Shown: positions 1,335 through 61,247 of the stretch, in pieces
Position numbering within the stretch: the first letter of the stretch is position 1
Layout: each line of letters starts with the position of its first letter
Virus record (IMG/VR): IMGVR_UViG_3300031884_000002
Location: 248,001 to 312,000 of that record
Direction: 5' to 3' (one strand)
Length of the DNA: 64,000 bases
Made by a program: the position numbers and the translations under genes
Notes under the pieces: generated by a model
Seen by the model: the letters and a program-made list of their open reading frames with translations, nothing else
Database searches by the model: none
Told to the model about the DNA's origin: nothing

Positions 1335-1379
1335 AATAACGAAAATTACAAAATAGATTACTATTTATATGGAGAAACA

Positions 1380-1997
1380 ATGAAGATTCTAATACCAAAT
1401 TATATATTTAATGCATCGGCAAAACAAATCACTTTTCCGACATACACTGCTTTATCATTATCTTCATTTTTAATTATTACAGATACTACAGTAAACAAAA
1501 TAATTTATAATTTTGCTGACCCAACTGCGGGCGGAACTGTATCGGGAAATATATTAACATTAACCTATAATACGGTTGGACTGAGTAATTCTGACCAATT
1601 ATTGATATATTATGATGATGGAACGGTTCAAGCGAGAGACACTACACTTCAGTTAATGGAAAATCAAAATGATTTATTAAGAAGAATGGTGAAATTGTTA
1701 GAATCGCAAGGAACCGTGGATTTAAGTAATAGACAACGAGTTTCTTTGGATGCGGCCCCCGCAGCATTAACTATAGGTGTTATTAATACAGGTATAGGAA
1801 CTTTTAATTCGACTCTTTCAACTGCCACTACATCTAATGGGTGGCAAGTAGCAAACGGCGGTGCTGGATTCACTCCATACGCATTGACTAATTTATTTCC
1901 AATGCCTGTTGCGGAAGGACCTGTTGGGCAAGAGTGGAGAATCGCCGATAACGCTAGGAACACTTTCGCAAATGCAATTAGACCAAATATAAAATAA
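1380..1997 (+). CDS. virion structural protein (tail-fibre associated)
   Basis: 205 aa; N-terminal YxFNASAKQITF...IIYNFADP domain typical of phage tail-associated proteins; GGAGA RBS upstream. Confidence 0.5.
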   Translation: MKILIPNYIFNASAKQITFPTYTALSLSSFLIITDTTVNKIIYNFADPTAGGTVSGNILTLTYNTVGLSNSDQLLIYYDDGTVQARDTTLQLMENQNDLLRRMVKLLESQGTVDLSNRQRVSLDAAPAALTIGVINTGIGTFNSTLSTATTSNGWQVANGGAGFTPYALTNLFPMPVAEGPVGQEWRIADNARNTFANAIRPNIK

Positions 1998-2003
1998 TAA
2001 TTT

Positions 2004-4991
2004 ATGGCACAACAACCTCCTTATATAACTACACCATTCACATCTTCTCTGAGAAGAACCTTAGATTTACCAGTATGGGAATGGTTAAGATTTTCACCAA
2101 TTGCAACGGCTGCGGCTTTCTGCACATGTACTTCTGATATTGGCACGGATAGATACATTTATTATCTCACTACAACCGCAGCACCTACTACTTTTTATAG
2201 ATATGACACTTATACAGACGGTTGGCAACAATTATCTCCTCCAAACACCGCATTGTTAACGGTTGGTGACATGCAGTATACAATGTTTAATGGGTTTCGT
2301 TGTAGAGCATTGTCTGGTAGTAATGCTACCAATATAATAATGCCAGCACTAACCGGACAAGTATTATCGGGAAGTGTAATTAAAATACAAGAAGGAACTG
2401 GTAGAGGACAAGTAAATACAATAGCAAACGTATCAGACCCAATTATTCAGGATCAAGGAGTTTTAACTACTGCGACTGCAACTCAATTAACTGATACTAC
2501 TAAAAAATGGAAGTTTAATCAGTGGACTGGTTATCAAGTTAGATTGGTATTTGATGCGGGTGCATCACAAGTACGTAATGTTTTATATAATGATGCTACT
2601 AATTTATATTTAAGTGATACTAACTATCAGCAAATTGATAGTTGGAACAATACAGGATTTTCAGCAGTTTTACCATTTGCTATACCCGTTGCCACTGCTG
2701 GTTCTCAAACTTATTATACGATTGAAGCATCCAATGTAAGTATGTCGGCAGCATTTCCAATTGCTCCTGATGTAACTTCTAAATTGATAGTTCAAACCGG
2801 AGGAATATGGTTATTATCTGGGGCTGCTGGTGCTCCGTTTTTTACTCTTCAATATTATGATATTGCGGAAGATTCTTGGACCACTAAAACTGCAAATCAA
2901 ACAATTCTTGCGGGTGCCGCCACTGATTGTGCGCTTGAAAAAATAGTTGAAGAAGCTGGTGTATTTTATACTGGTTACTGTGGAAATCCATCTGGTTCTC
3001 TATTTTATTTGGCGGCACCATCTGCATCTGTATTTGATATAAATGCAACTGGGTCTGCATCTTTTCCAGTTGATAGATATGTAAATTATCAATGTCGTAT
3101 TGTAAGCGGCAGTGGAATGGGACAAAGACGACGTATTATAGCAATGACTGGTTCATCATTTCAAGTAGTTCCTAATTTTAGCCCAATGATAGACTCCAGT
3201 TCTATTTATTATATCTATGGAGATACTGATAAAATGTATGTTAATTTTGGAGGTAATGCTGCTCAATTTCAATATTTAGTAGAACCAGATTTATGGGCGT
3301 TAGGAGATGTGTCATATACTGGTCTTGCTAGAAACTGGTCAGCACAATGGAATGGATCGGCTTCATATGAGCCAATCGCATTATCAACATTGGTTAAAAA
3401 CACAGGTGCTATAATTTCTATGTCGGCAACTCCAAACATTGGAGGAAGCGGATATTATGTGGGAGATGTATTCAATTTAACTACTGGTGGCACTGTGGGT
3501 AAAGGACGTGTAACCCAAGTGGGAGTTAGTGCTTCATTAATGAATGCCGTTCAAGCCGTAGAATTATATTCGGTTGGAACCGGTTATTCAGTTGGAAACA
3601 GCGCAACTACAAACGTTTTAGGAACTGGTGCTGGATTAACAGTTCAAATTACGGCAGTAAGTTCTGCTGGAAGAGTAACTACTGCTACTAACCATTTTTT
3701 TCAACGAGGTGATGTTATTAACCTACAAGGAACCACCGACCAAACGTGGAACATTCCTTATACTATTTTAGGAGTTGATGGATTAACTACATTTGATATC
3801 ACTGGGTCATCTACCGCTGCTCCAACCGCAGTAAGTTCATCGGGTGCCGCTACATTTGTCGATTCGGCTGCCAACTGGCAACCTAATGAATTAGTTGGAA
3901 AACTTATTCATAAATATTTAGTAGGTGTTACTGGAACAAGCGAAGTAAAACGTATTATTAGTAACACTGGAAATACAGCAACAGTAACAAGTAACTGGGT
4001 GGCAAACCCAGTAAGCGGAACTGGACGATATTCAATTTATGAAGCCAAAGGATTTGGACGTGATGAACAGTTTAGAAATCCAGTTTATAATGGTCGTGGA
4101 TATGCAGTGAGTGGTTCTGGAAATACTCCAACTTCATCCATTTTATATGATACGTCTCATAATTGGGCCTATAATCAATGGTCCGGTTCAATTGTAAGAT
4201 TTACCGGAGGAACAGGAACAAACTCAGAATGTTTAATTTATACTAATACTTCACAATCATTAAGTTTTTCAACCTCTAGTATAACCGGTCAAACTGGAAC
4301 TTTAATTATTCCTGATACATCTTCAAAATATTTAATATATGATTCATTTGGTATTTGCACAGCGGCTGGAACTGCCACTACTTTAATAGATTATACAAAA
4401 AATTGGACGGTTAACCAATGGGCCGGTAAAAACGTAAGAGTTATTGGTGGAACTGATGCTGGATTTATTGAAGTTAAAGTAGCATCAAATACAAGTAATA
4501 CGTTGACAGTTGCGACTTTAACAACCGCAACTGCGGCAGATACTAATTATGTAATATATGGAGAAGCACCACGAAGTACTGGAATCGAAACCGTATGGGC
4601 GTTTGGAACTACGATTCCTAATCAAGCCGGAAAATACATATGGTGTCCAATAGGTGGTGGTTCTAATAGAATTAGTAGATATGATTTAACTCAACATCTA
4701 TGGGATTATGGTATTTTTATTCAACCAATATCAGAAACATTAACTACCGGAACTATGTATTGTTATGATGGTGTAAATAGAATATATTTTACTGTTAATG
4801 CTACGGGACGTGTAATGTATTTGGATATATCTGCTAATAAAGTTGTTCCATATGGAATGACTCCATATGCCCATGGTGCCGCTGCCATAGGCAATCGAAT
4901 GGAACTTATAAACAGTCCAGATGGGTTACAATTCATTGTTATATTCCGTCATACTGGACAGGAAGTTTGGAGAAGTTTGATTATTGTATAA
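2004..4991 (+). CDS. large virion protein with Kelch-like beta-propeller elements and internal DxxKxWxxNQW repeats
   Basis: 995 aa; FYRYDTYTDGW, LQYYDIAEDSW, ISRYDLTQHLW blade motifs; repeated LTDTTKKWKFNQWTG / LYDTSHNWAYNQWSG / LIDYTKNWTVNQWAG. Confidence 0.6.
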   Translation: MAQQPPYITTPFTSSLRRTLDLPVWEWLRFSPIATAAAFCTCTSDIGTDRYIYYLTTTAAPTTFYRYDTYTDGWQQLSPPNTALLTVGDMQYTMFNGFRCRALSGSNATNIIMPALTGQVLSGSVIKIQEGTGRGQVNTIANVSDPIIQDQGVLTTATATQLTDTTKKWKFNQWTGYQVRLVFDAGASQVRNVLYNDATNLYLSDTNYQQIDSWNNTGFSAVLPFAIPVATAGSQTYYTIEASNVSMSAAFPIAPDVTSKLIVQTGGIWLLSGAAGAPFFTLQYYDIAEDSWTTKTANQTILAGAATDCALEKIVEEAGVFYTGYCGNPSGSLFYLAAPSASVFDINATGSASFPVDRYVNYQCRIVSGSGMGQRRRIIAMTGSSFQVVPNFSPMIDSSSIYYIYGDTDKMYVNFGGNAAQFQYLVEPDLWALGDVSYTGLARNWSAQWNGSASYEPIALSTLVKNTGAIISMSATPNIGGSGYYVGDVFNLTTGGTVGKGRVTQVGVSASLMNAVQAVELYSVGTGYSVGNSATTNVLGTGAGLTVQITAVSSAGRVTTATNHFFQRGDVINLQGTTDQTWNIPYTILGVDGLTTFDITGSSTAAPTAVSSSGAATFVDSAANWQPNELVGKLIHKYLVGVTGTSEVKRIISNTGNTATVTSNWVANPVSGTGRYSIYEAKGFGRDEQFRNPVYNGRGYAVSGSGNTPTSSILYDTSHNWAYNQWSGSIVRFTGGTGTNSECLIYTNTSQSLSFSTSSITGQTGTLIIPDTSSKYLIYDSFGICTAAGTATTLIDYTKNWTVNQWAGKNVRVIGGTDAGFIEVKVASNTSNTLTVATLTTATAADTNYVIYGEAPRSTGIETVWAFGTTIPNQAGKYIWCPIGGGSNRISRYDLTQHLWDYGIFIQPISETLTTGTMYCYDGVNRIYFTVNATGRVMYLDISANKVVPYGMTPYAHGAAAIGNRMELINSPDGLQFIVIFRHTGQEVWRSLIIV

Positions 4992-5317
4992 TGCCATTTG
5001 TATATTATAATTGGGAACAAGTTAATATAAACTGGGAGGCTGAATCTCAGGTATGGGAGGCAGTTGGTTATATACTCAATGAGTTAGGAATACCTCTAGG
5101 AGCACCTCCTATTTCATTTGCAAATGAAATAGAATTACAAGAAAAGATTGACAGGTTAGAACATCAGAAAAAAGAAAAACTTATTTCGGTTTTAATTATG
5201 ATAGGAAATGAAGAGTATAAAGAAAAAAGAAAACAAAATAAGAATATAAAACTTAAAGTATCTGATATAAAAACTATTGCGGCACACCATGCTCTAAATG
5301 TAACTTTACAGAAATAA
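4991..5317 (+). CDS. hypothetical protein
   Basis: ORF track 4967..5317; in-frame ATG at 4991 overlaps the upstream TAA (TAATG), the likelier start. Confidence 0.6.
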   Translation: MPFVYYNWEQVNINWEAESQVWEAVGYILNELGIPLGAPPISFANEIELQEKIDRLEHQKKEKLISVLIMIGNEEYKEKRKQNKNIKLKVSDIKTIAAHHALNVTLQK

Positions 5318-5355
5318 TCATATATTTTTAGTATTTTATTCTATATTTATTATCA

Positions 5356-10272: not shown

Positions 10273-11901
10273 ATGGCATTTGATTTATTAACAAAAGTAT
10301 CGAGATTAGTCAATGGACAACGATACACAAGTACTGATTTAGGAAGTACACAAGAAGCATATCAGTCATCCATTCAAATGGGAATTGGAGAAATATGGGC
10401 GCAAGATAATACACTTCCAAGTTCAAGTTTGCCATTTTCAGGAAGTTCATCTCCAAATACAATATTAACCAGTGGAAGTTTAAAATATTGGTATAGGTGG
10501 GGATTGACGCTTGATAATAGTGCAACTGCAACTGGAAGTTCGGTTTGGTTTTTTACGTCTCCATCGGGTTCGGCTGGAGGAATTGGTGGTCAATTAATTG
10601 ACCCCGGCCAACAAACTAATTTTATAAGTCCAAAATACGGTATTCCGGGTATTTCTGGATTTAAATCAGAAGATTCTCCTCCCGGATATGCAGTGACTAT
10701 AAACAGTTCATCCAACGATGTCAGTTTTGGATTCGTTAATCCAAACAGTTTTCCATATCAATTCGATTATAAAACCGGAGTACTTGAGTTTACTTCGACT
10801 ATAATACCATCAGGAAGTTTATATGCAACAGTATATCAATATAACGGACAATTTTTATCGGCGGCATTAACCAATATTACATGTAGTACAATTAATGCAA
10901 CCTCTTTTACAGGAAGCCATTTTGGAACTAGTAGTTATGCCATAACTGCATCATACATTTCAGGAAGTAATTCAGTATCTTCATCATATGCCACAACTTC
11001 GTCATACGCATTAACAAGCGGAGGTGGAGGAACAACTTTAGTTACCGGTTCAACATATCCTATTACATCAAGTTGGTCGATTACATCTAGTTATTCATTG
11101 TTGAGTTTATCGGCATCATATTTTAGTGGCTCAATTTCAAATGCGGTTACTGCTATAACTTCGTCGTTCTCATATTATGCTATTTCATCATCATATTCGG
11201 CAACCTCATCATATACAAGTTCATTATATACAACAAGTTCATTATCATCATCATTTGCATCCAGTTCCATTTCATCTAGTTATGCATTAACTGCATCCTA
11301 CGTTGCAACAAGTTCCGGAGTTATGGGAGGAACTTTAAATTATATACCTATGTGGTCTGGAAATACAGCATTGTCATCCAGTAATATTTATTTAACTGGA
11401 AGTAATATTGGAATAAATACAATTTCACCTTCATATTCAGTTCAAATAAGCGGAACATTTGCACCAGTTGGAGATGCGATATATTCACTTGGAAGTTCCA
11501 CCAATAGATTTAACACGTTATACGCACAATCAACCACCGTTGGAGCATTCTTTGAAGTTGGATTAAGAACTGAGGGGGTTGGAATAAATCCAACCGGAAC
11601 TATTGTAATATGGAAAAAGGGAAAATTGGAACCATCTACAATAGAAGAAGATGAAATGGTAATGGGAGTATTAAAAGAAGGAAAAGATGAACCTATAATT
11701 TTAGGAGCCGAGCCTATTCTGGTAACTGGAAAAGTAGAAGAAGGAGATTATATAGTAACAAGTAATAAAAAAGGACATGGAAAAGCAGTAAAACGAGGAA
11801 TGGTATTTAAAAAGGATTTATTTGGAAAAGTTATAGCTCAAGCATTGGAAGCATCAGATAAAGATAGTAATTTAATAAAAGCGATGATTCGGAAATTTTA
11901 A
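10273..11901 (+). CDS. tail fibre protein with C-terminal intramolecular-chaperone-like (peptidase G2/IMC-like) domain
   Basis: 542 aa; YQFDYKTGVL N-domain; YSLGSSTNRF; charged C-terminus ..GAEPILVTGKVEEGDYIVTS..GKVIAQALE. Confidence 0.6.
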   Translation: MAFDLLTKVSRLVNGQRYTSTDLGSTQEAYQSSIQMGIGEIWAQDNTLPSSSLPFSGSSSPNTILTSGSLKYWYRWGLTLDNSATATGSSVWFFTSPSGSAGGIGGQLIDPGQQTNFISPKYGIPGISGFKSEDSPPGYAVTINSSSNDVSFGFVNPNSFPYQFDYKTGVLEFTSTIIPSGSLYATVYQYNGQFLSAALTNITCSTINATSFTGSHFGTSSYAITASYISGSNSVSSSYATTSSYALTSGGGGTTLVTGSTYPITSSWSITSSYSLLSLSASYFSGSISNAVTAITSSFSYYAISSSYSATSSYTSSLYTTSSLSSSFASSSISSSYALTASYVATSSGVMGGTLNYIPMWSGNTALSSSNIYLTGSNIGINTISPSYSVQISGTFAPVGDAIYSLGSSTNRFNTLYAQSTTVGAFFEVGLRTEGVGINPTGTIVIWKKGKLEPSTIEEDEMVMGVLKEGKDEPIILGAEPILVTGKVEEGDYIVTSNKKGHGKAVKRGMVFKKDLFGKVIAQALEASDKDSNLIKAMIRKF

Positions 11902-11963
11902 TTAAAATCTATATTTTATATAAAATAAATCTATATTTATATAAAAGAAAGCAATAAAATATT

Positions 11964-22322: not shown

Positions 22323-22337
22323 TAGAAAGAAATTAAA

Positions 22338-22631
22338 ATGATACCATTATTAACTCCAATAACTCCTCCGTCACCAACATTTGATTCAGTATGGATTACT
22401 TCATTAAATATAAATGCATATAATCCTCAGCAGCCGGTAACGGCGAATGTTATTGTATGTCCTATGAGTACTGCTACACAAACATTAAATACTAACTTGA
22501 GTGTTAATGTACAGATACCAGATTTATTTGCTTTAGCCGCTAGTAATAATTATATTGCAAATACAATGGGTTCAATATTTGCATATGTTTCCGACCAGAT
22601 TGCAAGTGGAAGTATAGTATTTCCAACTTAA
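22338..22631 (+). CDS. small virion/fibre-associated protein (paralog 1)
   Basis: 97 aa; aligns with 22637..22930 (WIxxLxI..P..P..A; IPD; MxxIFxYV). Confidence 0.6.
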   Translation: MIPLLTPITPPSPTFDSVWITSLNINAYNPQQPVTANVIVCPMSTATQTLNTNLSVNVQIPDLFALAASNNYIANTMGSIFAYVSDQIASGSIVFPT

Positions 22632-23305: not shown

Positions 23306-23395
23306 TATATATAAATATAACACATATAAATGACTACTAAAAATATTTTCATTTTCTTCGACTTTTTATTCTACGACATTATATGTATATAGTGT

Positions 23396-29690: not shown

Positions 29691-29827
29691 AAAAGTTTTT
29701 CTTATTCTCTGAAGTTATTAGAACCCCAATAATATTTTTATTTATTATCACTACAAAAGATTGTAGCATTTGAATATAAATATAATTAAAAAAACGAAAA
29801 ATGAAATTATTTTTTATATTTATGTTT

Positions 29828-30430: not shown

Positions 30431-30445
30431 TTTATATTTATAGTT

Positions 30446-30790: not shown

Positions 30791-30798
30791 TATTTATA
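30791..30798 (+). promoter_or_regulatory. TATTTATA putative late promoter (representative + strand copy)
   Basis: also at 1362, 11934, 16826, 21085, 30435, 31974, 53863 upstream of + genes. Confidence 0.65.
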
Positions 30799-31895: not shown

Positions 31896-31901
31896 TGTGT
31901 A

Positions 31902-31930: not shown

Positions 31931-31984
31931 TAAAATAATTTAATGTTTACATGATTATTAGAAAAGTTTTATATATTTATAATC

Positions 31985-35190: not shown

Positions 35191-35196
35191 AAATGT

Positions 35197-35224
35197 AGTA
35201 TATATTATAGATTTAAAAAGTCAA
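35197..35224 (-). promoter_or_regulatory. sigma70-type promoter, probably leaderless transcript
   Basis: TTGACT-16 nt-TATACT, 6 nt before ATG 35190. Confidence 0.6.
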
Positions 35225-35484: not shown

Positions 35485-35490
35485 GTTGAT

Positions 35491-36910: not shown

Positions 36911-36919
36911 ACAAGCCAA

Positions 36920-36947
36920 AGTGTATCAGATACTTACCAGAAGTCAA
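36920..36947 (-). promoter_or_regulatory. sigma70-type promoter
   Basis: TTGACT-16 nt-TACACT, 9 nt before ATG 36910. Confidence 0.6.
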
Positions 36948-41484: not shown

Positions 41485-41505
41485 ATAGATATAATATAAA
41501 TATAC

Positions 41506-45757: not shown

Positions 45758-46084
45758 TTATTCTATCATTTTATCAGGACGACGAGCCAAATCTTTTTTT
45801 CCAATTGGAGTTAATTCATATCCAAGTGCATTGCTTCCAGCTAACGCTTTTTTACTACCTCCATCATTTTTTGAAAATGCGGCAGGAATAGTATAACCTT
45901 CACCACCTGTAACCGACGATTCCTCGATTTTTTCCTCTTCTTCATCTTCCATTATTCTTCGTTGAAGTGGAAGTTTTCCGGTTGCTGGAGCAACTGCTCC
46001 CGTTGCCGATTCTTCCGTAGTCAATTCTTCCAACAATGTCTTAGTTATAATTTTAACTAATGATTTTAAATCGGATTGTTTCAT
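45758..46084 (-). CDS. small acidic head-region protein
   Basis: 108 aa; LKSLVK..LLEE leader, GYTIPAAF motif. Confidence 0.6.
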   Translation of the reverse strand: MKQSDLKSLVKIITKTLLEELTTEESATGAVAPATGKLPLQRRIMEDEEEEKIEESSVTGGEGYTIPAAFSKNDGGSKKALAGSNALGYELTPIGKKDLARRPDKMIE

Positions 46085-46977
46085 ATTACTCTCGAAGTAA
46101 GATTTTTATTGATTTCTTTCAATAATTCATAACTAAGCATAACTACGGTAACGTGATTATCTTTAACAACTTTATCTGGGTTAATTTTATCTAATTGATT
46201 TATAACTTCATTTATTTTAATCTTTATAACATCTGAATCTTTAATTTTTGTAGAAGATTCTTTAAGCTTGGATTTAATTTTGGAGATATGTTCTTTTACT
46301 AATACATCAAACTTATTAGTATTGGCAACATTACATATATATTCTCTTAATATTTCATGTTGTTCGTCATCTAATATACTTGCAAACTTTTCGTTTAATT
46401 TTTCAACTAATAATTTATAAGTAAGTAATCGTATATCTTCTGATTGTTCGTTATAAGTTTCCATCGAAACTTCATTTTCTTTTAACATTGATTGCTTATT
46501 AACCAAATGTTCTACAATTGAGTTTTTTGCTTTATAGATTTCATCAACATCAAATTTTAAATCGGAAGTAGCATTCTCAAATAGTTTATAAATAGATGCT
46601 GATATTTTATAATTTTTAACATGAGATTTTAACATCTGTTCCAATGGATATGCCGCTTTAATCTCCTTAATTAGTTCATATTTTTCAAATAACAATGATT
46701 TATCATCTAATTTTTTACGAGCATCTAAAATAGTAGAATAATAACGTTCAGCATATGCTTCGGTTTTAATATTTTCACTTAATAATTTATTATATAATTG
46801 CCATTCTTTCCCAATTTCAGTATCTATTTTGAAAAACTTATGAAGTATTTCTGATGCTTTTGATGACTTTTTACCGCTAATAATATCAGCGGTAACTTGC
46901 TTAGTCAATAATTCGAACAAAATGCCCGTATTTCTAAACTTTGAATGGCGCATTTTTTTCTGGGTTGTATTATTCAT
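46081..46977 (-). CDS. conserved head-region protein downstream of portal
   Basis: 298 aa; HSKFRNTGILFELL N-terminal motif; helical. Confidence 0.65.
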   Translation of the reverse strand: MNNTTQKKMRHSKFRNTGILFELLTKQVTADIISGKKSSKASEILHKFFKIDTEIGKEWQLYNKLLSENIKTEAYAERYYSTILDARKKLDDKSLLFEKYELIKEIKAAYPLEQMLKSHVKNYKISASIYKLFENATSDLKFDVDEIYKAKNSIVEHLVNKQSMLKENEVSMETYNEQSEDIRLLTYKLLVEKLNEKFASILDDEQHEILREYICNVANTNKFDVLVKEHISKIKSKLKESSTKIKDSDVIKIKINEVINQLDKINPDKVVKDNHVTVVMLSYELLKEINKNLTSRVI

Positions 46978-47031
46978 ATTATATTAAATGATAATTATAA
47001 ATATATTCTTTTACCTGTAAAATATAATATA

Positions 47032-50000: not shown

Positions 50001-51294
50001 CAACTGTTACATCATATACATCTATTTCTCCGACATATTCTATGGATTTTACTTTATGATTTAATTTAGTAAAAATCTCTTGTTTAAACGATTTCCAGTT
50101 ATGATTGTTAGATTTTAATCGATTGGTTATAAGTGATATATCACAATGTAAATATTTAGATACTTCTTTAAGATTTAATTTTCCATAATTTCTATAATAC
50201 TCAAAAGATTGCTCTTTTATTATATCAAATGTTAATTCGTCTCTATAATTTGGATTTTTTCCTAAATTATAATTTCTGGTTTTACAATATGTTTTTAATG
50301 ATTTAGAACGTACTTCATTAGATTCTTTCGTATGTATTTTTCCATAAAATGGATTATTAGTTCCAGATCTTTCACCATTCCAATGATGAAACTTTCTATT
50401 TTTATATCCTTCGGAAGAATGTATTTTTTCTAATGTTTTTTGTTTATTTTCAAACGACCACATTTTATCAGTTACTAATTTAATATGATATTGTTTATGT
50501 GCTGTTTTATCCATTATAACTAAATTATCCGGCATATTATATGATGGATTGAACTGTTGATGATGAACCACTTCATTATCTTTGAGAGGTCTATTAAATT
50601 GTTCTGCTATTACATTGTGTTCTGGTTGCCATCCTTTTGAAAAATTATAAACATGCCTATATCCTTTGTTATAAAAATCTTTTTGATAAAACGGCATTAT
50701 AGAGTCCCCTACTTTTATATCTTCTAATTTTTTATAATCTCCATTTCTCATTAAGAACGGATGTCCTCCGCTTGCTATTATATATTTACCCTTTTCAAAT
50801 GTTAATTTCCATGCTTTTAATTTTCCTCCATCTTTTTTTCTTGGATGATATGCATTTCCCAATTTTATAGAGTTTGATTCGTGGTCATAAGAATAAACAT
50901 AAAATCTTTCTTGTGGTTTATTTTTATATTTTTCAGCCAACTCTGCTATTGTAGGATACGTTCCATCTGGCAGTGGAATGATAGTTTCTCCTGCCACACA
51001 TTGATAATCCCTAAACATTTCAATACGAGCCGCTTGATAAGATAATGAAAAGTCTCTAGAATATGCATTATACGCAGTTGAACGAATACGATTAAATCTA
51101 TCTCGGAGAGAGTTTCTATCTCCTGCCATCATCGAATGGTCGGTGTCTTTAACAATTAATTGTTTTCCACCGACATTTCTAACTATTGTTTCTGATGAGA
51201 ATAAAGTTTTTAACCGAGCATATAAAGATTGTTTCTTTATATCTACGATATCATCGTTAATTGAATTTGGTCTATTTATTTGGTTAAGTGCCAT
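47032..51294 (-). CDS. gp20: portal protein (T4 gp20-like) precursor with two inteins
   Basis: [68 protein letters not shown]; spliced product 696 aa. Confidence 0.95.
   Translation of the reverse strand: [1420 protein letters not shown]
48775..49902 (-). mobile_element. intein 2 (376 aa) with HNH homing endonuclease
   Basis: starts [10 protein letters not shown], block B CTSNH, ends AYDL..FTHN followed by Cys; internal [20 protein letters not shown]. Confidence 0.92.
49957..51000 (-). mobile_element. intein 1 (348 aa) with HNH homing endonuclease
   Basis: starts [10 protein letters not shown], ends VYDVTV..NF..VFSHN followed by Thr; internal EHNVIA..VVHH..N..PDNL and NUMOD3. Confidence 0.92.
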
Positions 51295-51343
51295 CGTATT
51301 ATCTTTCTATTATTATATAAATATATCTATACATTGTCTAAAA

Positions 51344-52957
51344 TTAACCAATTAGCCATTTTAATGACTCAACTTCATTGTTTATACCGCCCGTTTTCAT
51401 ACTCCATGGATCATTTGGCATGTTTCTTTGATTATTATGATATACTGGAACGTTGTCAATTTTTGCTTGTCTAAAATGGTCAAGAGATGACCTAGTTAAA
51501 TCTATTCCTTTTTGTCTAAGTAATAATGCAGTATCTCTTATCCACAGTCCAATACATAAACTCATGACTAAATCATCGTTATAACCTTGCATTGCTTGTG
51601 CCTTGAAGTTTTTCCAAATGAAAGTTTCCAATTCTGATAAGGTTCTGGCGGAATATATTTTAATTTCTTTTTCCGACATATATCTGCGAAGGTAATCTAT
51701 CATCACAGGTCGAGTTTTCATAGATGTTGAAAATCCTGCCGTTGATTTTTTTTCTTCTGCATTATATCTATTAGAATGCTGATGTTCTGGGTCAACATAT
51801 TTTAAATCATCCGTCATATAAAATAAGTTTGAATATTTTCTATTTATAACTTGTTGAATAACTGCCCATCCCGTATTTTCACGTTCAATTACTAATAATG
51901 CAGTGTTGTATTCCGCCGCAAGATTTACTAACATATTTCCATATTCTGTAGTTCCTATTTGACCTTTATATTCGGCACATTGTTCTAACGATACCGCATC
52001 TAAAACATGACATGCTTGATAATCTCCACCATCTCCACGAGCTGTATCGGCTGATAAAATATAAGATTTATCATAATTGGGTTCTTTCCAATACCACAAA
52101 CATCGGTCACTTAGTCGTTTATCATATGGGTCAGTTCTAATATGTTTTTTATAATATTCTATCAATTCTAGAGCTATAACGTTATCTCCGGATGCTAACC
52201 AATCACAATCACATTCCTGACCTGCTAATGATGCTCCCAATTCCTTTGTTTGAGCGTCTCTCCATGCTTGATTTCTCTCTGGGTGTAAATCCCACGGAAG
52301 CCTAATAGGATTAAAATTATTTCTTTTTTCACTCGCATCGCACCACATTCTATGGAAAAAGTTTCCATATCCATTGGGAGTTGATAAAATAATAGAATTA
52401 CCACCCGTTGACAATGTACTCCAAGATGAAGCCCAAATATCATCTATGTTTTCAATAAATGCGGCTTCATCAATAATAAGAAGATATACTGCCATAGAAC
52501 GACCAGCATCACCACTGGATGATACTGCTCTTATATGTGATCCATTTTTAAATTTTAATGATAATCGATTATCTTCAATGCATGGTATTTTTAACCAAAC
52601 CGGCAAATTATCATTTGCAAATCTAACTTTTGAAATTAACTCTTTCGAAACTTCTTGTTTAATCGAAATAATAAGAATATTCTTATCTTTATTGAATATC
52701 ATTACCCATAATGAATATGCCGCCACTAATGTAGAGATACCCATTTGACGAGATTTTAAAACTATATTAAACTTATTATCGGCAAATTGTTTAAGCGTAT
52801 CTTCCTGAAATGGAAATAATTCAAATTTTAAGGTTCCTTTTATTTGATGTTGTATCTTTACATAATTTTTCATGAAATATACAGGAGACGCTGCACATTT
52901 GGCATATTCTTCCGCTACTATTTCTTGTAATGTTTTCTTTTTTGCTGGCTCACTCAT
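51344..52957 (-). CDS. gp17: terminase large subunit (T4 gp17-like)
   Basis: LFPFQ, KSRQMGIST, LIIDEAAF, LSTPNG, ADTARG, DDLVMS. Confidence 0.95.
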   Translation of the reverse strand: MSEPAKKKTLQEIVAEEYAKCAASPVYFMKNYVKIQHQIKGTLKFELFPFQEDTLKQFADNKFNIVLKSRQMGISTLVAAYSLWVMIFNKDKNILIISIKQEVSKELISKVRFANDNLPVWLKIPCIEDNRLSLKFKNGSHIRAVSSSGDAGRSMAVYLLIIDEAAFIENIDDIWASSWSTLSTGGNSIILSTPNGYGNFFHRMWCDASEKRNNFNPIRLPWDLHPERNQAWRDAQTKELGASLAGQECDCDWLASGDNVIALELIEYYKKHIRTDPYDKRLSDRCLWYWKEPNYDKSYILSADTARGDGGDYQACHVLDAVSLEQCAEYKGQIGTTEYGNMLVNLAAEYNTALLVIERENTGWAVIQQVINRKYSNLFYMTDDLKYVDPEHQHSNRYNAEEKKSTAGFSTSMKTRPVMIDYLRRYMSEKEIKIYSARTLSELETFIWKNFKAQAMQGYNDDLVMSLCIGLWIRDTALLLRQKGIDLTRSSLDHFRQAKIDNVPVYHNNQRNMPNDPWSMKTGGINNEVESLKWLIG

Positions 52958-53616
52958 ATCGTATCTAATTTATATTGTTTACATAACTTAGCATACTCTT
53001 TTTTATTTTCTGCTTTTATTTTTGTGGCTTCCTTAATAAGTTTCAATACTTTTTTTAAATCCGATTTAGAATCGGCTAATATTTTATCTTTATTAGTATT
53101 TACCCATACCGCATCGTAACCAACTCCATCTTCACAGGGAAGTTTTACATCTCCATTGTCATTAGTAAAATATTCAACTATCTCTTTTAATTTTTCTTTG
53201 CTATCTTTCAAATCTCCAAGTGCATAAGATGATAATTTATATTTTTCATATACATCCCATGCCCCTACAATTCTCAATTTGGTTTCATAATCTATCAAAC
53301 AATTTTCACATAATCCGGTTCGATTGAAAAAATATTCATCTCGTTTAGTTCCCCATTTAATGTTTAATTTACATTTACAGATTTTATTTCCAATGGCTTC
53401 TCTAATTATGTCTCCTTGGGTCTTGGTTAATTTAACTATTTTGCCATTTTCTTTTCTATATTTAATGTCGTTATGGTCTATCCATTCTTCCCCTTCTTTT
53501 CTAAACTTATCTTTTTCTGCTATGTGATTAGATACTTTAATCTCTGTCTTTTCTCCTTTTTGCCATTTTTTAATGACTTCGATGTTACCCATTGATTTAT
53601 GTAATTTTATAGCCAT
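52954..53616 (-). CDS. hypothetical protein upstream of terminase
   Basis: 220 aa; RKEGEEW.D, CxC and CxxC; ATGA-coupled to terL. Confidence 0.65.
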   Translation of the reverse strand: MAIKLHKSMGNIEVIKKWQKGEKTEIKVSNHIAEKDKFRKEGEEWIDHNDIKYRKENGKIVKLTKTQGDIIREAIGNKICKCKLNIKWGTKRDEYFFNRTGLCENCLIDYETKLRIVGAWDVYEKYKLSSYALGDLKDSKEKLKEIVEYFTNDNGDVKLPCEDGVGYDAVWVNTNKDKILADSKSDLKKVLKLIKEATKIKAENKKEYAKLCKQYKLDTI

Positions 53617-53619
53617 AAC

Positions 53620-53790
53620 TTATTTTTTGATTTTTAATTTTTCCCACTGTTTAAGGTTATTTGATTTCCAAAGAAGATATTCTTTTTTAAGATGGAAATA
53701 ACATGATTCTGGAACCATAATTGAAAAATACCGCCAGCCATCGCTTTCTTTTAATTTTCTATATTTTGATTGGTATTCTTTATTTGCCAT
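53620..53790 (-). CDS. small basic hypothetical protein (56 aa)
   Basis: MANKEYQSKYRKLKESDGWRYFSIMVPE...; TATTTATA 4 nt upstream; not in the ORF track. Confidence 0.55.
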   Translation of the reverse strand: MANKEYQSKYRKLKESDGWRYFSIMVPESCYFHLKKEYLLWKSNNLKQWEKLKIKK

Positions 53791-53874
53791 CTCTTATAAA
53801 TAGCGTTAAAAACACTAAATAACACTAAAATAAACTAATTATGTTAATATAAGATAATAATATATTTATATAAT

Positions 53875-54750
53875 ATGATTAGTTTAAAACAATTATTAGA
53901 AGGAATATCGTATCTATCAAATACTAATAAACTGAATTTTAGTTTTGATAGTGATTTTCCAGCACCCGACGATAATTTAATATACTTGAAACCAAATAGA
54001 AGAAATTCTAGGTTATATAATATAAAAGGATTTAAAATTTTTTATGGATATTATTTCAATCGAAATTTTACTCCTAATAAACCTTCGTATTTTAAACCAA
54101 ATAATACACAATCTATAAATGATGCAAGAACAACAATAAAACACGTTGATATTAAAAAAATATATATGTTTAATGGGATGGATTCTGCTGGAAATTATAC
54201 ATGGACTAGGGATGAATCTCCAATTATAAAAATGATAGATTTAGCAATTGAACGATTTTCTGAATTGGTAGATTTAAACTCATTTACATCCATCATATCG
54301 GCTCCTTCTAGTTCTCGGTTGAATGATTTAATATTAGATAGATTTCAAATGAGTGTTGGAACCCATATAATTACAAAAAATGCACTTCAAAAAAATGAAA
54401 TAAATCAAATTGCATATTTTATGGATGAATATAATAAATTAAGCGATGACGGTAAGCGAAAATTTCACTCTGTAAAAAACGGAATTGTTAAAAAAACAGG
54501 AACATTTGAAATGAAACACGTCCCTCCTACTATGCGAAGTTTATTCCATAATTTTATATCATTGAAACAAAATAATCAAAAAGAATCTATTAAAATAGCA
54601 AATAAAATATCAAATGGAAAAGTTTTAATAATAGACGATACTATAGGAACTGGTGGAACATTTTTAGAAATAGTTAGAGAAATAAAACCATTAAAACCAA
54701 AAGAAATATATTTATTTGGACTTTTGCAAGATTATTATTATAGTGTATAA
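53875..54750 (+). CDS. type I phosphoribosyltransferase-fold protein
   Basis: PRPP-binding motif KVLIIDDTIGTGGT; APSSS loop; MISLKQLLE leader. Confidence 0.8.
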   Translation: MISLKQLLEGISYLSNTNKLNFSFDSDFPAPDDNLIYLKPNRRNSRLYNIKGFKIFYGYYFNRNFTPNKPSYFKPNNTQSINDARTTIKHVDIKKIYMFNGMDSAGNYTWTRDESPIIKMIDLAIERFSELVDLNSFTSIISAPSSSRLNDLILDRFQMSVGTHIITKNALQKNEINQIAYFMDEYNKLSDDGKRKFHSVKNGIVKKTGTFEMKHVPPTMRSLFHNFISLKQNNQKESIKIANKISNGKVLIIDDTIGTGGTFLEIVREIKPLKPKEIYLFGLLQDYYYSV

Positions 54751-54752: not shown

Positions 54753-57700
54753 TTATATATGTTTAACTTGAGAGAATCCTCCGATTCGTTTTACCTCTAT
54801 ATTATTTTCTATAATATCTTTGATTTCCGATTGATGGCTAATGATAAAAATACCAGAAAACTTTGATTTTAACATAGAAAATAAAGTATCCATAGATAAT
54901 AAGTTTTCACTATCAAGGACTCCAAATCCCTCATCACACAGAAGAACGTCAGTTCTAACTAAATTGGAAGCCATTATAAGACCAACTCTTATAGCAAACT
55001 CCATTTCAAACCTTTCTGCTCCAGAACACGTTTCAATTACATTCTTTCTATCATCGTAACAGATATATGGAATTATATCTGTTCCGGTATCCTCTAATTT
55101 CAATGTAAAATCAGTAATTTGAGTGAGTATATCATTTACTTCCTTTTCAATGGTAGGAATGGCGTTGCATATAATACGATAGGGAATTCCATCTCGTCCG
55201 ATTGCTTCTATATATTTTTCATAATCATCGAATTGTGCTTCTTTTTCTTTAATATTCTTAATTGTAGTTTTTAGATTTGATATGGTATTTTTAAATACTT
55301 CTGCTTTACCGTATATCTCGGTCATTTTACTATTTTGTTTATTTATAGAAGATTCAATATTATTTGCTTCGGTTTTATAAGTTGATAATGTCTTATTGAT
55401 TGTATTATTATTTTCAACCGAGGTTAGATTTCTATTATATATATCTATTTTCAAACTGGTCGAAGTTAAGTTTTCTTTGTTTTTTGTCAATACATTGTTT
55501 TTATTTAGAATTGAAATTGATAATGACTGAGATATATCTTTTAAAACTCCTTGTTTACTTAATAATTTGGTATATAATTCATATTTTGAAACCACCCATT
55601 TAATATTTTCAAACTCCGATTCTAATTTTTCAAGATTTTCTACTAATTCTTTTGCTATTATTTTATCTTGTTTTAATTGTTCTTTACAACTGGTAGCATC
55701 TTTTACAAACGCATTATCATTACAGAACTTACAATTTGGGTCGTATTTGTGATTTTTAAGTTTATCTACTTTGTCTAATTTTCCTTTAATTTCTATTTTT
55801 TTATCGTTCATTTTCTTTTTTGCCGCAGAAATTTTATCAACGATTGATTTATATTTTTTATGATTCTCTATTAAATCTAATTTTTCAATTTTAGACACGC
55901 TTTTTTCTACCATCCTAATATAACGCTCATATCTTGATGATTTATGTTTTAGAAATGAAATATCCGATGTTAATTGATTAATAGCTGATTCCAATTTTGA
56001 TTTTTCGATTGTTAGTGAACTTATATCAGTCGGAATATTAAAATCCAATTTAACCAATTTTGATGCCTCTTCCTGTATTTTATTATTGATATTATCTAAT
56101 TCTAATTTTGATGATTTTGTTTCGTCTATTAGTTTATTGTATAATTCATTGGCATAAGCTAATGCATTTTCATTTTGAAGTAGGTCAGTTTGATAATCCT
56201 TTCCTTTGTGTAATTTTAATTCAATGTTTAATTCTTTCCTATTTTCAGTTGCCACACCGCATAATTTATCAAATACATCAATTCCTATAAACTTTACTAA
56301 CATATCTTTCCGGTCACTATTCCCCATATCTATGAATGCTAAATTATTTTTTCCAAATTGAAAATAAGCAGATGTTAAAATAAAATCATCAAATGTTCCA
56401 ATATGATTTCGTATAATTTCATTTGTATCACTTCTTTCCGTTCCATTTAATTCTATTTTTTCATCATTTTCCAATTTCCAGAAATAAACATCCACTTTAA
56501 CTGCTCCTGTCCTTCCGGTGGTTCCAATTCGCTCTATAAAATATCGGATTCCATCAATTTCAATTTCTAATTTGCATTTAAATGATGTTTTTTGATTATT
56601 TATAATATGATTTCCCTTGGATACTCTTGAAGTTTTATCAAATAGTGTAAATAATAAAATCTCGAAAATAGAACTTTTACCGATTTTATTTTTGCCTAAT
56701 ATTCCATATATTCCATTTATATTTTCAAAATTGATACTATTATCCTCTCCATAAGAAAACATGTTTTCCCATTCTAATTTTATGAGTTTGTATCTGGATG
56801 TTTTAGTATGGTCCAAGATTCCGATTTCATTATTAATTTTGCGATTTATATATAAGACACTATCGAGTTTAGTGACCGATATATCAGGTATTATTTCTTT
56901 TAAGTAATCTTCAATTAACTTATTTTGATATTCGACATTGAATATATTTTTAATATTTATATCAGACACTTGTTTATTTGTAGTATCTATATCGGAAGTT
57001 TCTCTGATGTATGAAGTTTCGACTATATTGGATTTTTCTTTTAATTTTGATATTATAGATTTTACTTCGGATGGAATAGTTTCCTTACATATAGTTCTAA
57101 GTCTAACGTTTTTTGGAAGTTTACTAATATCAGTTACTAAATTTCCATGATTTATTTCAATAGTAAAAAATCCATAGTCGTTTGGAATTGTATTATGAAT
57201 ATACGTATTAGTTTCTAAATCCCATAATGAATATCCTTTATTACTTGTTTCTCCGTGATTTTGTTGAATTAAACTACCAGCATATCTTACTGTTGGTTTA
57301 TCATTATTAGAATCATATATTTGTAAATCTTGAGATTTATGAATATCTCCCATTAGAATTAAATGATGATTATCAAACAATGGAAGCATTATATTTGGAT
57401 TATTTAATATGTGTCCCGTATCGGAAATAGATTGGTCGATGGCACCATGAAATAATCCTATGATTCTTTTATATTTGTTTTTATAAACTGACGGAATATT
57501 TTTTCCTAACATGTATTTATCAGGAGAGTCAAACACCGACATATGATTAAATAATATGTCGGCATATCCATATATACCAGAATCTTTTAAATAATATATA
57601 TTATCATTATTTAACATGCTTATGATAGGAGTCAACGCATCCAATCTGTTTTTGTTTTGAACTAAACCGTCGTGATTTCCTGGAATAATAAGGGTTGGAA

Positions 57701-57950
57701 ATATATCAGAACATCCTATAAATAACTCTTTAACTAATTCCAATCCTTCCGGTTCCATTGAAGTTTTTTGATGAAATATATCTCCACATATTACAATTAT
57801 ACTATTATCTACAGGGAGTCCTTTAATCATCTCGAAAAAATTACTAAATACGTGTCTATATTCTTCTATACGTGAGTTATTTCTACAATGGATATCCGCC
57901 ATATGGACGATGTATTTAATATCGTGTTGATTTGTTTTTAATATATTCAT
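54753..57950 (-). CDS. fused SbcD-SbcC (Mre11-Rad50; T4 gp47-gp46-like) recombination nuclease/ATPase
   Basis: ADIH, GDIFH, PGNHD, FHG, GDIH, YAGS; Walker A GKNKIGKSS, hook CKFC, signature SGAE, Walker B DEGFG.LD, ISH. Confidence 0.93.
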   Translation of the reverse strand: MNILKTNQHDIKYIVHMADIHCRNNSRIEEYRHVFSNFFEMIKGLPVDNSIIVICGDIFHQKTSMEPEGLELVKELFIGCSDIFPTLIIPGNHDGLVQNKNRLDALTPIISMLNNDNIYYLKDSGIYGYADILFNHMSVFDSPDKYMLGKNIPSVYKNKYKRIIGLFHGAIDQSISDTGHILNNPNIMLPLFDNHHLILMGDIHKSQDLQIYDSNNDKPTVRYAGSLIQQNHGETSNKGYSLWDLETNTYIHNTIPNDYGFFTIEINHGNLVTDISKLPKNVRLRTICKETIPSEVKSIISKLKEKSNIVETSYIRETSDIDTTNKQVSDINIKNIFNVEYQNKLIEDYLKEIIPDISVTKLDSVLYINRKINNEIGILDHTKTSRYKLIKLEWENMFSYGEDNSINFENINGIYGILGKNKIGKSSIFEILLFTLFDKTSRVSKGNHIINNQKTSFKCKLEIEIDGIRYFIERIGTTGRTGAVKVDVYFWKLENDEKIELNGTERSDTNEIIRNHIGTFDDFILTSAYFQFGKNNLAFIDMGNSDRKDMLVKFIGIDVFDKLCGVATENRKELNIELKLHKGKDYQTDLLQNENALAYANELYNKLIDETKSSKLELDNINNKIQEEASKLVKLDFNIPTDISSLTIEKSKLESAINQLTSDISFLKHKSSRYERYIRMVEKSVSKIEKLDLIENHKKYKSIVDKISAAKKKMNDKKIEIKGKLDKVDKLKNHKYDPNCKFCNDNAFVKDATSCKEQLKQDKIIAKELVENLEKLESEFENIKWVVSKYELYTKLLSKQGVLKDISQSLSISILNKNNVLTKNKENLTSTSLKIDIYNRNLTSVENNNTINKTLSTYKTEANNIESSINKQNSKMTEIYGKAEVFKNTISNLKTTIKNIKEKEAQFDDYEKYIEAIGRDGIPYRIICNAIPTIEKEVNDILTQITDFTLKLEDTGTDIIPYICYDDRKNVIETCSGAERFEMEFAIRVGLIMASNLVRTDVLLCDEGFGVLDSENLLSMDTLFSMLKSKFSGIFIISHQSEIKDIIENNIEVKRIGGFSQVKHI

Positions 57951-59437: not shown

Positions 59438-59836
59438 TTATTTGGCTCTATTAACTAATCTACATCCCACATATTTATTATAGTATTCTTTATCAAAAAT
59501 AGCATTACTATCTATAATATGTTTTACCTCGGCATAATTCAATGTTAATTTTGAATCGCACCATTGTATAATTTCAAACTTAAAATTATCTTTTCCTAAT
59601 TTAGATATATCTTCCTGTAACGAAACACACGAACCACAATAGGTTTTCCAATCACTTTCCGTTGTTCCTCTTCTTTTATTTTTATTTCCTTTTAATGCCT
59701 TTTTACAGGTTTTAAATATAATAAGTTTTCTACCTATATATTTTTTGTTATTGGATTTATTAGTTATTAAATATATAAATCCAATACTACCATCTGGAAT
59801 ATTTCCTTCAAATTGCCAATGTCCATTATCATTCAT
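59438..59836 (-). CDS. GIY-YIG-type nuclease
   Basis: GFIYLITN..KKYIGRK, ESDWKTYCGS, F.FEI, YYN. Confidence 0.75.
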   Translation of the reverse strand: MNDNGHWQFEGNIPDGSIGFIYLITNKSNNKKYIGRKLIIFKTCKKALKGNKNKRRGTTESDWKTYCGSCVSLQEDISKLGKDNFKFEIIQWCDSKLTLNYAEVKHIIDSNAIFDKEYYNKYVGCRLVNRAK

Positions 59837-59858
59837 AGTATATAAATAGCAAACCCTC

Positions 59859-60095: not shown

Positions 60096-60099
60096 ATAT

Positions 60100-60786: not shown

Positions 60787-60900
60787 AACTTTTTGACTTT
60801 CTTTTTATTGTTTTTACGGCAAATGTTGTCATTGCCGACATTATATACATATATGAAAAATATTAAAAAATAACAAAATAAATGAATTATTTTTATAATG

Positions 60901-60925
60901 AAAAAACTCTCCATTCGGAGAGTTT
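60901..60925 (-). terminator. rho-independent terminator
   Basis: AAACTCTCC-loop-GGAGAGTTT followed by a T-run on the - strand, after 60946..61212. Confidence 0.75.
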
Positions 60926-60945
60926 AATCGAAAATTATTTAATTA

Positions 60946-61212
60946 TTATTTATACCTAGTTGTATTTATGTTATTAGCATAGCGGGAGATTTCTTTATAA
61001 TTTCCTCCATCAGTTACTCCTTCAAAATTACTCTGTCCTAATGTTTCTTTAACTTGAAACTGTGGATTTGTATCATATAATTTTGATTGTAATGATGCCG
61101 GTGCAGTAGCAGTTCCAGCCGTTTTTGCATTAAATGCACCTCCTTCACTTTGCTGGGCATATCGAGTAGCTAGGTTAATAGTGAGGCTTGTTCTTTGTGT
61201 TTCGTTGGGCAT
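60946..61212 (-). CDS. small hypothetical (late) protein
   Basis: 88 aa; TATTTATA upstream, terminator downstream. Confidence 0.6.
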   Translation of the reverse strand: MPNETQRTSLTINLATRYAQQSEGGAFNAKTAGTATAPASLQSKLYDTNPQFQVKETLGQSNFEGVTDGGNYKEISRYANNINTTRYK

Positions 61213-61247
61213 AATGTTATATTTTTACTGTTATATATAAATATAAA

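Follow-up and report, generated by a model that had tools for sequence, protein, structure and literature searches.

Genomic region and gene content

The 64,000-nt window, i.e. the whole stretch of DNA analysed here (positions 248,001 to 312,000 of IMG/VR record IMGVR_UViG_3300031884_000002), belongs to the 353,772-bp genome of a lake phage and carries genes for virion structural proteins, the major capsid protein, the prohead protease, a gp20-like portal protein with intein, and the terminase. Twenty copies of the octamer TATTTATA (in the following: box) precede ORFs of this region on both strands (Table 1). They include a back-to-back pair in a divergent intergenic region (53795/53863), while operon-internal genes lack the box.

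Table 1 Boxes and early-type promoter in the window (window coordinates)
Position	Strand	Element	Distance to ATG (nt)	Downstream ORF	Remarks
1362..1369	+	TATTTATA	10	1380-1997	virion structural protein; only window site with a GGAG in its short leader
11934..11941	+	TATTTATA	22	11964-16790	1608 aa
16826..16833	+	TATTTATA	4	16838-21076	1412 aa
21085..21092	+	TATTTATA	3	21096-22322	virion structural protein, phrog_1645
23310..23317	-	TATTTATA	4	22931-23305	124 aa
25162..25169	-	TATTTATA	4	24336-25157	273 aa
25588..25595	-	TATTTATA	10	25170-25577	135 aa
26420..26427	-	TATTTATA	56	25602-26363	just downstream of the capsid gene
29775..29782	-	TATTTATA	5	29683-29769	heads the capsid operon; 28-codon mini-ORF, whose end overlaps (ATGACTAA) the start of 28242-29690 (482 aa); major capsid gene 26479-28206 follows
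30435..30442	+	TATTTATA	3	30446-30769	
30791..30798	+	TATTTATA	3	30802-31407	
31974..31981	+	TATTTATA	3	31985-32929	homing endonuclease
41495..41502	-	TATTTATA	10	39880-41484	534 aa
44620..44627	-	TATTTATA	4	43896-44615	239 aa, no function assigned; prohead protease gene 43273-43899 follows
46996..47003	-	TATTTATA	18	46081-46977	298 aa, conserved head-module protein
51316..51323	-	TATTTATA	21	47032-51294	portal gene (gp20-like, with intein)
53795..53802	-	TATTTATA	4	53620-53790	heads the operon 53620-53790 / 52954-53616 / terminase 51344-52957; back-to-back with the box at 53863
53863..53870	+	TATTTATA	4	53875-54750	divergent partner of the box at 53795
59841..59848	-	TATTTATA	4	59438-59836	GIY-YIG / homing-endonuclease-like
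61236..61243	-	TATTTATA	23	60946-61212	
35191..35224	-	early-type promoter, TTGACT-N16-TATAAT-like		34708-35190	ATG 34 nt after the T of TTGAC; others in the window start at 31930, 35518 and 36947

Frequency, orientation and spacing of the box

The observation made in the sequence-only reading, i.e. about 20 strand-polarised copies, 11 of them 3-4 nt before an ATG, was confirmed: all 20 coordinates carry TATTTATA on the expected strand, 11 copies lie 3-4 nt before an ATG opening a real ORF, and the others lie 5-56 nt upstream. Enrichment against shuffled sequence had been named beforehand as a test, and the window was found to hold 46 copies on both strands versus 25.0 +/- 5.1 in dinucleotide shuffles, with 0 of 100 shuffles reaching 46. 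TATTTATA-N3-4-ATG occurs 12 times in the window versus 1 for TATAAATA-N3-4-ATG, and 42 versus 10 times in the genome, where 30 first-order Markov simulations yielded 5.4 +/- 1.9. Across the genome, sense-oriented TATTTATA lies within 40 nt upstream of 64 ORF starts as compared to 9 for its reverse complement (binomial p = 2e-11), with spacers of 4 nt (22 sites), 6 nt (8) and 3 nt (6) and an overall range from 1 to 35 nt. TATTTATA is the most enriched upstream 8-mer (68 observed, 9.1 expected, z = 19.6).

The core is invariant and the preceding base is A in 88 % of sites. Two details of the sequence-only reading were not confirmed. One-mismatch variants such as TATGTATA or TATATATA are no more frequent 2-8 nt before starts than variants of the reverse-complement control (29 versus 30), and of the two ORFs claimed to encode homing endonucleases (31985-32929 and 43896-44615) only the former had a homing-endonuclease hit. 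No position from -50 to -3 of the box carries strong information, apart from a weak T-run at -19..-15, i.e. a conserved -35 element was not found. Genes preceded by the box have a median length of 242 aa and include portal, terminase-operon, capsid-operon and virion proteins; some, however, encode homing endonucleases or metabolic functions rather than virion proteins.

Conservation in related phages

Eighty related metagenomic phage loci from IMG/VR (capsid protein 59-83 % identical, GC 28-53 %) hold 240 sense sites before ORFs, 164 of which lie 3-7 nt from the ATG. In a relative with 53 % GC, the word stands alone in GC-rich flanks. The same octamer precedes terminase, portal, sheath, tube and hub genes of Flavobacterium phage immuto, there 11-25 nt upstream, without SD and often directly after a hairpin plus T-run, as well as late genes of Microcystis phage Mel-JY01, there 18-36 nt upstream and each with its own GGAG between box and ATG.

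The dominant spacing of 3-7 nt and the total lack of Shine-Dalgarno sequences in the present genome could also suggest a translation-initiation element substituting for Shine-Dalgarno and bound by the ribosome or by protein S1. This is very unlikely in view of the variation in spacing within the genome and between lineages, the separate GGAG in Mel-JY01, the absence of the box from operon-internal genes, its position behind terminator hairpins in immuto, and the back-to-back pair at 53795/53863. A distance to the ATG that varies by lineage indicates a promoter rather than a ribosome-binding signal. An RNA-level or protein-binding site, i.e. an endoribonuclease cleavage site trimming mRNAs to leaderless form or the operator of a late regulator (antiterminator or translational repressor), would agree with the AU-rich nature of the box and its fixed position close to the AUG, and T4 offers precedents in RegB cleavage and in RegA operators overlapping start codons. 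It is likewise very unlikely, since many boxes are the only candidate promoter of a divergent or terminator-preceded transcription unit, the element has the length, stringency and lack of a -35 seen in a T4-type late promoter, and a protein with a predicted sigma fold co-occurs with it.

Early-type promoters

A second promoter class of this phage, assigned to early genes, has the form TTGACA-N16-TATACT, with the -10 hexamer also only 5-9 nt from the ATG; genes with this promoter have a median length of 89 aa. Early promoters of immuto, in contrast, are of the Bacteroidetes -33/-7 type (GTTG ... TATATTTAG). Thus, early promoters follow the host type, whereas the late box is identical in both phages, which supports a phage-encoded reader.

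A weak or -35-less promoter read directly by the host primary sigma factor, with timing arising otherwise (e.g. by inactivation of -35 recognition), would require no phage specificity factor. Together with the preceding (T/G)A, the 10-mer contains TATATT (tATATT as -10 hexamer), matching TATAAT at 5 of 6 positions, and also TATATTTA, matching the Bacteroidetes -7 box TAnnTTTG (PMC9723704) at 7 of 8 positions, with A in place of G. Thermus phage P23-45 switches to -35-independent middle and late promoters using host sigma A. This possibility is considered unlikely, because the base before the box is C in 5 of 12 late sites of immuto, destroying A-11 in that register, the octamer is invariant in phages whose early promoters show different host sigma specificities, one-mismatch variants are not used, which is unlike host promoters, and a conserved protein of predicted sigma fold exists in the clade. 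The late box lacks the TTTG of Bacteroidetes sigma-A promoters (-33 TTTG / -7 TAnnTTTG at -12..-5), although it shares with them an 8-bp box ending about 4 nt before the (here inferred) start.

A candidate sigma-like protein

Searches with phrog_234, phrog_12791, PF04542, TIGR02937 and a local gp55 HMM revealed no gp55 or sigma-70 homologue. However, a 281-aa protein encoded at genome positions 327205-328050 (-), about 15 kb beyond the window, is conserved in this phage, immuto and Mel-JY01 (E 3e-36 and 3e-27), has more than 1050 homologues at 53-88 % identity, and belongs to no Pfam family. Its gene is located downstream of an early-type TTGACA promoter, with a 98-aa ORF in between. The AF2 model (pLDDT 71.9) predicts a sigma region-2 fold for the N-terminal lobe. 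Residues 51-168 have their best VIA match to T4 gp55 in the late open complex 7d7c_F (Z 10.1, rmsd 2.7 Å over 105 residues) and also match the isolated sigma-2 domains 4lup, 5h6x and 4x8k (Z 8.0-8.8, 2.3-2.7 Å over 90-96 residues). All 50 listed VIA rows are sigma factors, as are about 30 of the top 49 Foldseek rows. Helical folds, however, can reach Z of about 8-13 by chance. The nearest named protein-atlas cluster, based on protein language-model features, is a viral sigma family carrying PF04542 (score 0.97, 201 shared features), which constitutes the only sequence-derived support: profile-profile comparisons (hhalign) against a gp55 alignment gave probabilities of 0.1-7.6 %, and a PDB profile search found no sigma. 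Moreover, LR756508 possesses the sigma-like gene (E 1e-63) but no TATTTATA enrichment, i.e. the pairing of gene and box is not one-to-one.

Another conceivable reader is the divergent PolA-like protein of the divPolA1 family (genome positions 205903-207252), acting as a single-subunit RNA polymerase with transcription starting at or just after ...TATA. The protein is conserved in this phage, immuto and Mel-JY01 alongside a second, ordinary DNA polymerase (bioRxiv 10.1101/2024.04.26.591309), and its alignment to Klenow motif A shows His in place of the steric-gate Glu710 (DYSQIELR versus DYSAFHPR). Nine-nucleotide AT-rich promoters occur with mitochondrial T7-like polymerases. A search for PF00940 returned no hit, with the control likewise giving none. 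This possibility is regarded as most unlikely, since the protein of 449 aa with an inactive exonuclease lobe has no room for promoter-recognition domains, its gene neighbours are replication genes, and the sigma-fold protein would be a simpler reader.

Proposed late transcription and leaderless mRNAs

Taken together, TATTTATA, usually preceded by A, is most likely the -10-type late (structural-gene) promoter of this phage and of a large clade of freshwater and marine phages with T4-like capsids, probably read by host core RNA polymerase carrying the 281-aa sigma-like subunit. The inference from the sequence-only reading, i.e. a late promoter recognized by a divergent phage sigma factor with altered -10 specificity and yielding largely leaderless mRNAs, is supported as far as computation can take it. 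What the analysis establishes are the motif, its orientation, spacing, conservation and association with structural genes, and the sigma-like fold of the modelled candidate, while late timing, the exact transcription start, the leaderless state, and core polymerase binding and recognition of this box by the candidate remain inferences, since the sequence was found in lake-water DNA metagenomes only and in no RNA run.

In this lineage, the start codon typically lies 3-7 nt (mode 4) after the box, and transcription should therefore begin at or within about 2 nt of the AUG. The late mRNAs would then be leaderless, which fits the complete lack of Shine-Dalgarno sequences. If the box is located at -12..-5, as is the Flavobacterium -7 box (PMC9723704), a 4-nt spacer puts the A of ATG at +1. 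With a box at -13..-6 as in T4, however, +1 would fall inside the ATG, so that the box-to-start distance must be 1-2 nt shorter than in T4 or the start must lie elsewhere. The 3-4-nt spacers argue for a box at -12..-5 or closer.

The T4 late promoter TATAAATA, read by gp55 with gp33 and the gp45 sliding clamp, is likewise a highly stringent 8-bp AT box (PMC2988020) at the -10 position without -35 element that occurs on either strand in front of virion genes. The proposed reverse-complement relation to it is a coincidence of an AT word; read in the same orientation, six of the 8 positions are identical and only positions 4-5 differ (TT, not AA). Sense-oriented TATAAATA itself is rare before genes here. 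Further differences from T4 are the box lying 1-2 nt closer to the presumed start, the absence of the SD-bearing leaders found in T4, and a candidate reader with a second helical lobe (residues 184-276) that gp55 lacks and without detectable sequence similarity to gp55. PolB and clamp-loader genes are present in this phage, whereas no gp33 or gp45 homologue was identified, the search having used T4 gp45 only, and immuto uses PolA-type replication.

Leaderless mRNAs such as lambda cI from PRM and those widespread in Actinobacteria and Deinococcus-Thermus also have a -10 element 6-7 nt upstream of the A of ATG and no SD. Here, however, leaderlessness would apply to most transcription units of a 354-kb phage and to both promoter classes, while only 5.5 % of mRNAs are leaderless in Flavobacterium (PMC9723704). 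Freshwater bS21-encoding Bacteroidetes phages (Chen et al. 2022, PMC9723584) share the kind of T4-like head module, the lake habitat and genome sizes up to about 330 kb, and Mel-JY01 carries bS21 in the head module. The present phage has no bS21 gene, and promoters, leaders or a sigma factor are not described in that study.

More tentatively, an abundant, mostly uncultured clade of large phages may have re-tooled the T4 late-transcription scheme, with a sigma of gp55 fold but no sequence likeness reading TATTTATA, and one sub-lineage including this phage may have moved both early and late promoters up against the start codons. Nearly every transcription unit would then yield a leaderless mRNA, representing a genome-wide translation strategy independent of SD and 5' UTR, possibly a way to bypass host initiation control, which would parallel the bS21 capture seen in sister phages.

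Genomic context and relatives

The IMG/VR virus record of 353,772 bp (CheckV 100%, GC 30.5%; G000 hereafter) carries in the window, which comprises its bases 248001-312000, a T4-like head and packaging module (see table). The portal gene harbours an intein with HNH and NUMOD3 motifs, giving 1420 aa in all, and the Mre11-like (gp47) and Rad50-like (gp46) nuclease subunits are fused in one ORF of 1065 aa, as is also the case in Microcystis phage Mel-JY01. The closest cultured relatives by capsid protein are Mel-JY01 (52%), Flavobacterium phage immuto (51.5%) and, distantly, Rhodothermus phage RM378 (37%), while a megablast search with 20 kb against phage records returned no match. The DNA was detected in lake-water metagenomes only, and none of the RNA runs searched contains it. 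Several replication genes outside the window appear split into 2-3 ORFs, which suggests inteins, introns or homing-endonuclease insertions.

Relatives were found mostly in MAG bins of Bacteroidota/FCB, but the nearest (76% identity) is a 1.4-kb contig in an Omnitrophota bin. Sister phages are predicted to infect Bacteroidetes (PMC9723584); the sigma-70-type early promoters of this particular phage (see below), however, do not fit Bacteroidetes sigma A and argue against such a host. A gene for ribosomal protein bS21, which Mel-JY01 carries inside its head module like the lake phages of PMC9723584, was not found in this phage.

Coordinates of features in the window, in the complete virus record (G000, contig C1) and in related phages; L-numbers denote the extracted loci.
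Sequence	Position	Strand	Feature
Window	26479-28206	-	Major capsid protein (gp23-like)
Window	29683-29769	-	28-codon mini-ORF starting 5 nt after a TATTTATA box; ends in ATGACTAA, overlapping the start of the 482-aa gene upstream of the capsid gene
Window	29775-29782	-	TATTTATA box of the capsid operon
Window	31896-31930	-	Early-type promoter
Window	35191-35224	-	Early-type promoter
Window	35485-35518	-	Early-type promoter
Window	36911-36947	-	Early-type promoter
Window	36944-37150	-	Small ORF resembling a piece of the major capsid protein (E about 1e-10 to the immuto and Mel-JY01 capsid proteins)
Window	47032-51294	-	Portal (gp20-like, with an intein)
Window	51344-52957	-	Large terminase
Window	54753-57950	-	Fused gp47/gp46-like nuclease
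G000	11866-12246	-	Small ORF resembling a piece of the major capsid protein (E about 1e-10, as above)
G000	200166-200483	-	Small ORF resembling a piece of the major capsid protein (E about 1e-10, as above)
G000	190568-194552, 194612-197501, 200581-203305		Apparently split replication genes whose ORFs each hit one Mel-JY01 protein: a 617-aa protein, a DnaB-like helicase and a RecA-like recombinase
G000	205903-207252 (L099: 2404-3753)	-	Divergent PolA-like protein (divPolA1 family)
G000	327205-328050 (L116: 3206-4051)	-	281-aa candidate late sigma factor, outside the window
G000	348819		TIGR02937 hit: HNH endonuclease with an HTH
Mel-JY01 (L094)	22183-22410		Ribosomal protein bS21 gene within the head module
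LR756508.1 (L115; record W01)	151943-193517		Locus of a 484-kb relative with the sigma-like gene but without TATTTATA enrichment

Occurrence and spacing of the box

The sequence-only reading had listed strand-polarised copies of TATTTATA, often located 3-4 nt before start codons, and this observation held: every listed coordinate carries the word on the stated strand. In the window 46 copies were detected as compared to 25.0 ± 5.1 in shuffled sequences, and eleven sites lie 3-4 nt before an ATG that opens an ORF. Genome-wide, 241 copies were counted against 141 ± 12 in Markov simulations, and TATTTATA-N3-4-ATG occurs 42 times, against 5.4 ± 1.9 in simulations and 10 for the reverse-complement word. 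Within 40 nt upstream of ORF starts, 64 sense and 9 antisense copies were found (p = 2e-11), with the spacer peaking at 4 nt, and TATTTATA is the most enriched upstream 8-mer (z = 19.6). The core is invariant and the preceding base is A in 88% of sites. One-mismatch forms, however, are no commoner than those of the control word (29 against 30), and the variants TATGTATA and TATATATA proposed in the sequence-only reading therefore lack statistical support. In the 50 nt upstream of the 71 box sites in the genome, a weak T-run is present 15-19 nt before the box (T 59-70%), whereas relatives display an A-run near -30 and a T-run near -16; these may represent terminator remnants or an upstream promoter element.

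T at -1 (69%) and A at +4 (65%) prevail across all ORF starts of the genome, but T at -1 is likewise found in 73% of operon-internal genes and reflects a general start-codon context rather than a start-site signal. Examination of divergent gene pairs for one promoter each was spoiled by spurious small ORFs in the crude gene calls.

Promoter versus translation signal

Three comparisons decide between a promoter and a translation signal. Firstly, the feature is shared by 80 related IMG/VR loci with capsid proteins of 59-83% identity and GC contents of 28 to 53%, which hold 240 sense sites before ORFs, 164 of them 3-7 nt from the ATG; in a relative of 53% GC the word stands isolated in GC-rich flanks five times in 17 kb. 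Secondly, in immuto the same word precedes, among others, the terminase, portal, sheath, tube and hub genes, where it lies 11-25 nt from the ATG and often directly follows a hairpin plus T-run. Thirdly, in Mel-JY01 it lies 18-36 nt upstream of late genes, each of which has its own GGAG between the box and the ATG. An element that keeps its sequence while its distance to the ATG and the translation signals change from lineage to lineage acts in transcription.

Two putative promoter classes

Box-bearing genes in this genome are large (median 242 aa) and include the virion genes, whereas a second class of about 100 small genes (median 89 aa) carries a different signal. These early-type genes are preceded by TTGACA, a spacer of about 16 nt, and TATACT or TATTCT. 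The T of TTGACA lies 34-37 nt before the ATG in 88 of 165 cases, and the -10 hexamer lies 5-9 nt (mode 6-7) before it. This is a canonical sigma-70 promoter with the A of ATG at about +1 to +3, so that early mRNAs should be leaderless as well. Early genes of immuto, in contrast, carry a Bacteroidetes-type promoter (GTTG ... TATATTTAG) and a conserved A-rich leader. Early promoters therefore track the primary sigma factor of the host, but the late box is identical in both phages, as predicted for a phage-encoded specificity subunit. Direct reading of the box as a host -10 or -7 element one register upstream is ruled out by the base before the box, which in immuto is often C.

With respect to geometry, the T4 box starts at -13 (PMC2988020), whereas the Flavobacterium -7 box lies at -12..-5 (PMC9723704). 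With the modal 4-nt spacer, a box at -12..-5 would place the A of ATG at +1, and with spacers of 3 or 6 nt the start would be within about 2 nt of the A. In the register of T4 the start would fall inside the ATG, and the distance here must therefore be 1-2 nt shorter than in T4. No Shine-Dalgarno sequence was found anywhere, G being depleted upstream of starts. As only 5.5% of Flavobacterium mRNAs are leaderless (PMC9723704), this design is unusual. The capsid operon differs slightly in that a mini-ORF is interposed after the box, which may reflect translational coupling from a leaderless start.

Candidate reader of the box

Direct searches for a sigma factor were unsuccessful. The T4 gp55 and gp45 proteins, phrog_234, phrog_12791, PF04542 and a local HMM built from 115 gp55 homologues yielded no hit in this genome, immuto or Mel-JY01, and the single TIGR02937 hit proved to be an HNH endonuclease rather than a sigma factor. 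Likewise, the Mel-JY01 ORFs beside the clamp-loader genes gave no sigma or clamp family. The annotated sigma factor of RM378 is a true sigma-70 (r2+r4), but has no homologue in this phage, and RM378 lacks the box. A search for a T7-like RNA polymerase (PF00940) gave no hit, but is uninformative as its control was not detected either. The divPolA1-family protein has His where Klenow has the steric-gate Glu710 (DYSAFHPR against DYSQIELR), and its sugar selectivity may be altered.

Comparison of the ORFs of this phage, immuto and Mel-JY01 revealed 46 shared proteins, and each shared family was compared with a gp55 alignment. The top, though weak, hit was the 281-aa protein, the immuto homologue of which had also been a weak hit of the RM378 sigma factor. 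The family comprises more than 1050 unannotated members at 53-88% identity and has no Pfam family. Its AF2 model (pLDDT 71.9) shows two helical lobes, with a predicted sigma-2 fold closest to T4 gp55, and about 30 of the top 49 Foldseek rows are sigma factors. VIA-align ranks T4 gp55 in the late open complex (7d7c_F) first, with Z 10.1 and 2.7 A over 105 residues, followed by 49 further sigma factors including isolated sigma-2 domains at 2.3-2.9 A; helical folds can, however, score Z of about 8-13 by chance. The profile-profile comparison of the two full alignments and a PDB profile search were negative. By protein language-model features, the nearest named cluster is a viral sigma family with PF04542 (0.97, 201 shared features). 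The gene is located downstream of an early-type TTGACA promoter, with an ORF of 98 aa between them. The relative LR756508 possesses the gene (E 1e-63, with one in-frame TAG) but not the box, its upstream regions being enriched in AACTTAAA and AAGACAGA instead; specificity must therefore have shifted in that branch, or the pairing of protein and box is wrong.

Interpretation and significance

The box is best explained as a T4-style late promoter without a -35 element and with an altered box sequence (TATTTATA), which is probably read by a phage sigma factor of predicted gp55-like structure and is placed such that late mRNAs, like the early ones, would be leaderless or nearly so. The interpretation offered by the sequence-only reading, i.e. 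a divergent phage sigma factor with altered -10 specificity producing largely leaderless late mRNAs, is thereby supported. While the existence, polarity, spacing and conservation of the box follow directly from the sequence analyses, the transcription starts (and hence the absence of leaders), the late timing and the pairing of the sigma-like protein with the box are inferred. T4-type late transcription as such is known, but no description of this box, of the sigma-like family or of the leaderless layout was found in the papers searched, and full-text searches for the word in connection with phages returned only primers.

This reading provides a simple, testable regulatory code for a widespread group of lake and sea phages that are almost all known only from metagenomes: one 8-9-bp word would mark late transcription units, which improves gene-start calling and operon maps. 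It points to a previously unannotated protein family with more than 1000 members as their candidate late sigma factor and would extend the gp55 paradigm far beyond the Tevenvirinae. The predictions are directly testable in the two cultured members, immuto and Mel-JY01. Sharing the same box but three leader designs, presumably leaderless here, A-rich in immuto and SD-bearing in Mel-JY01, the three related phages represent a natural experiment on how promoters and translation signals co-evolve with hosts.
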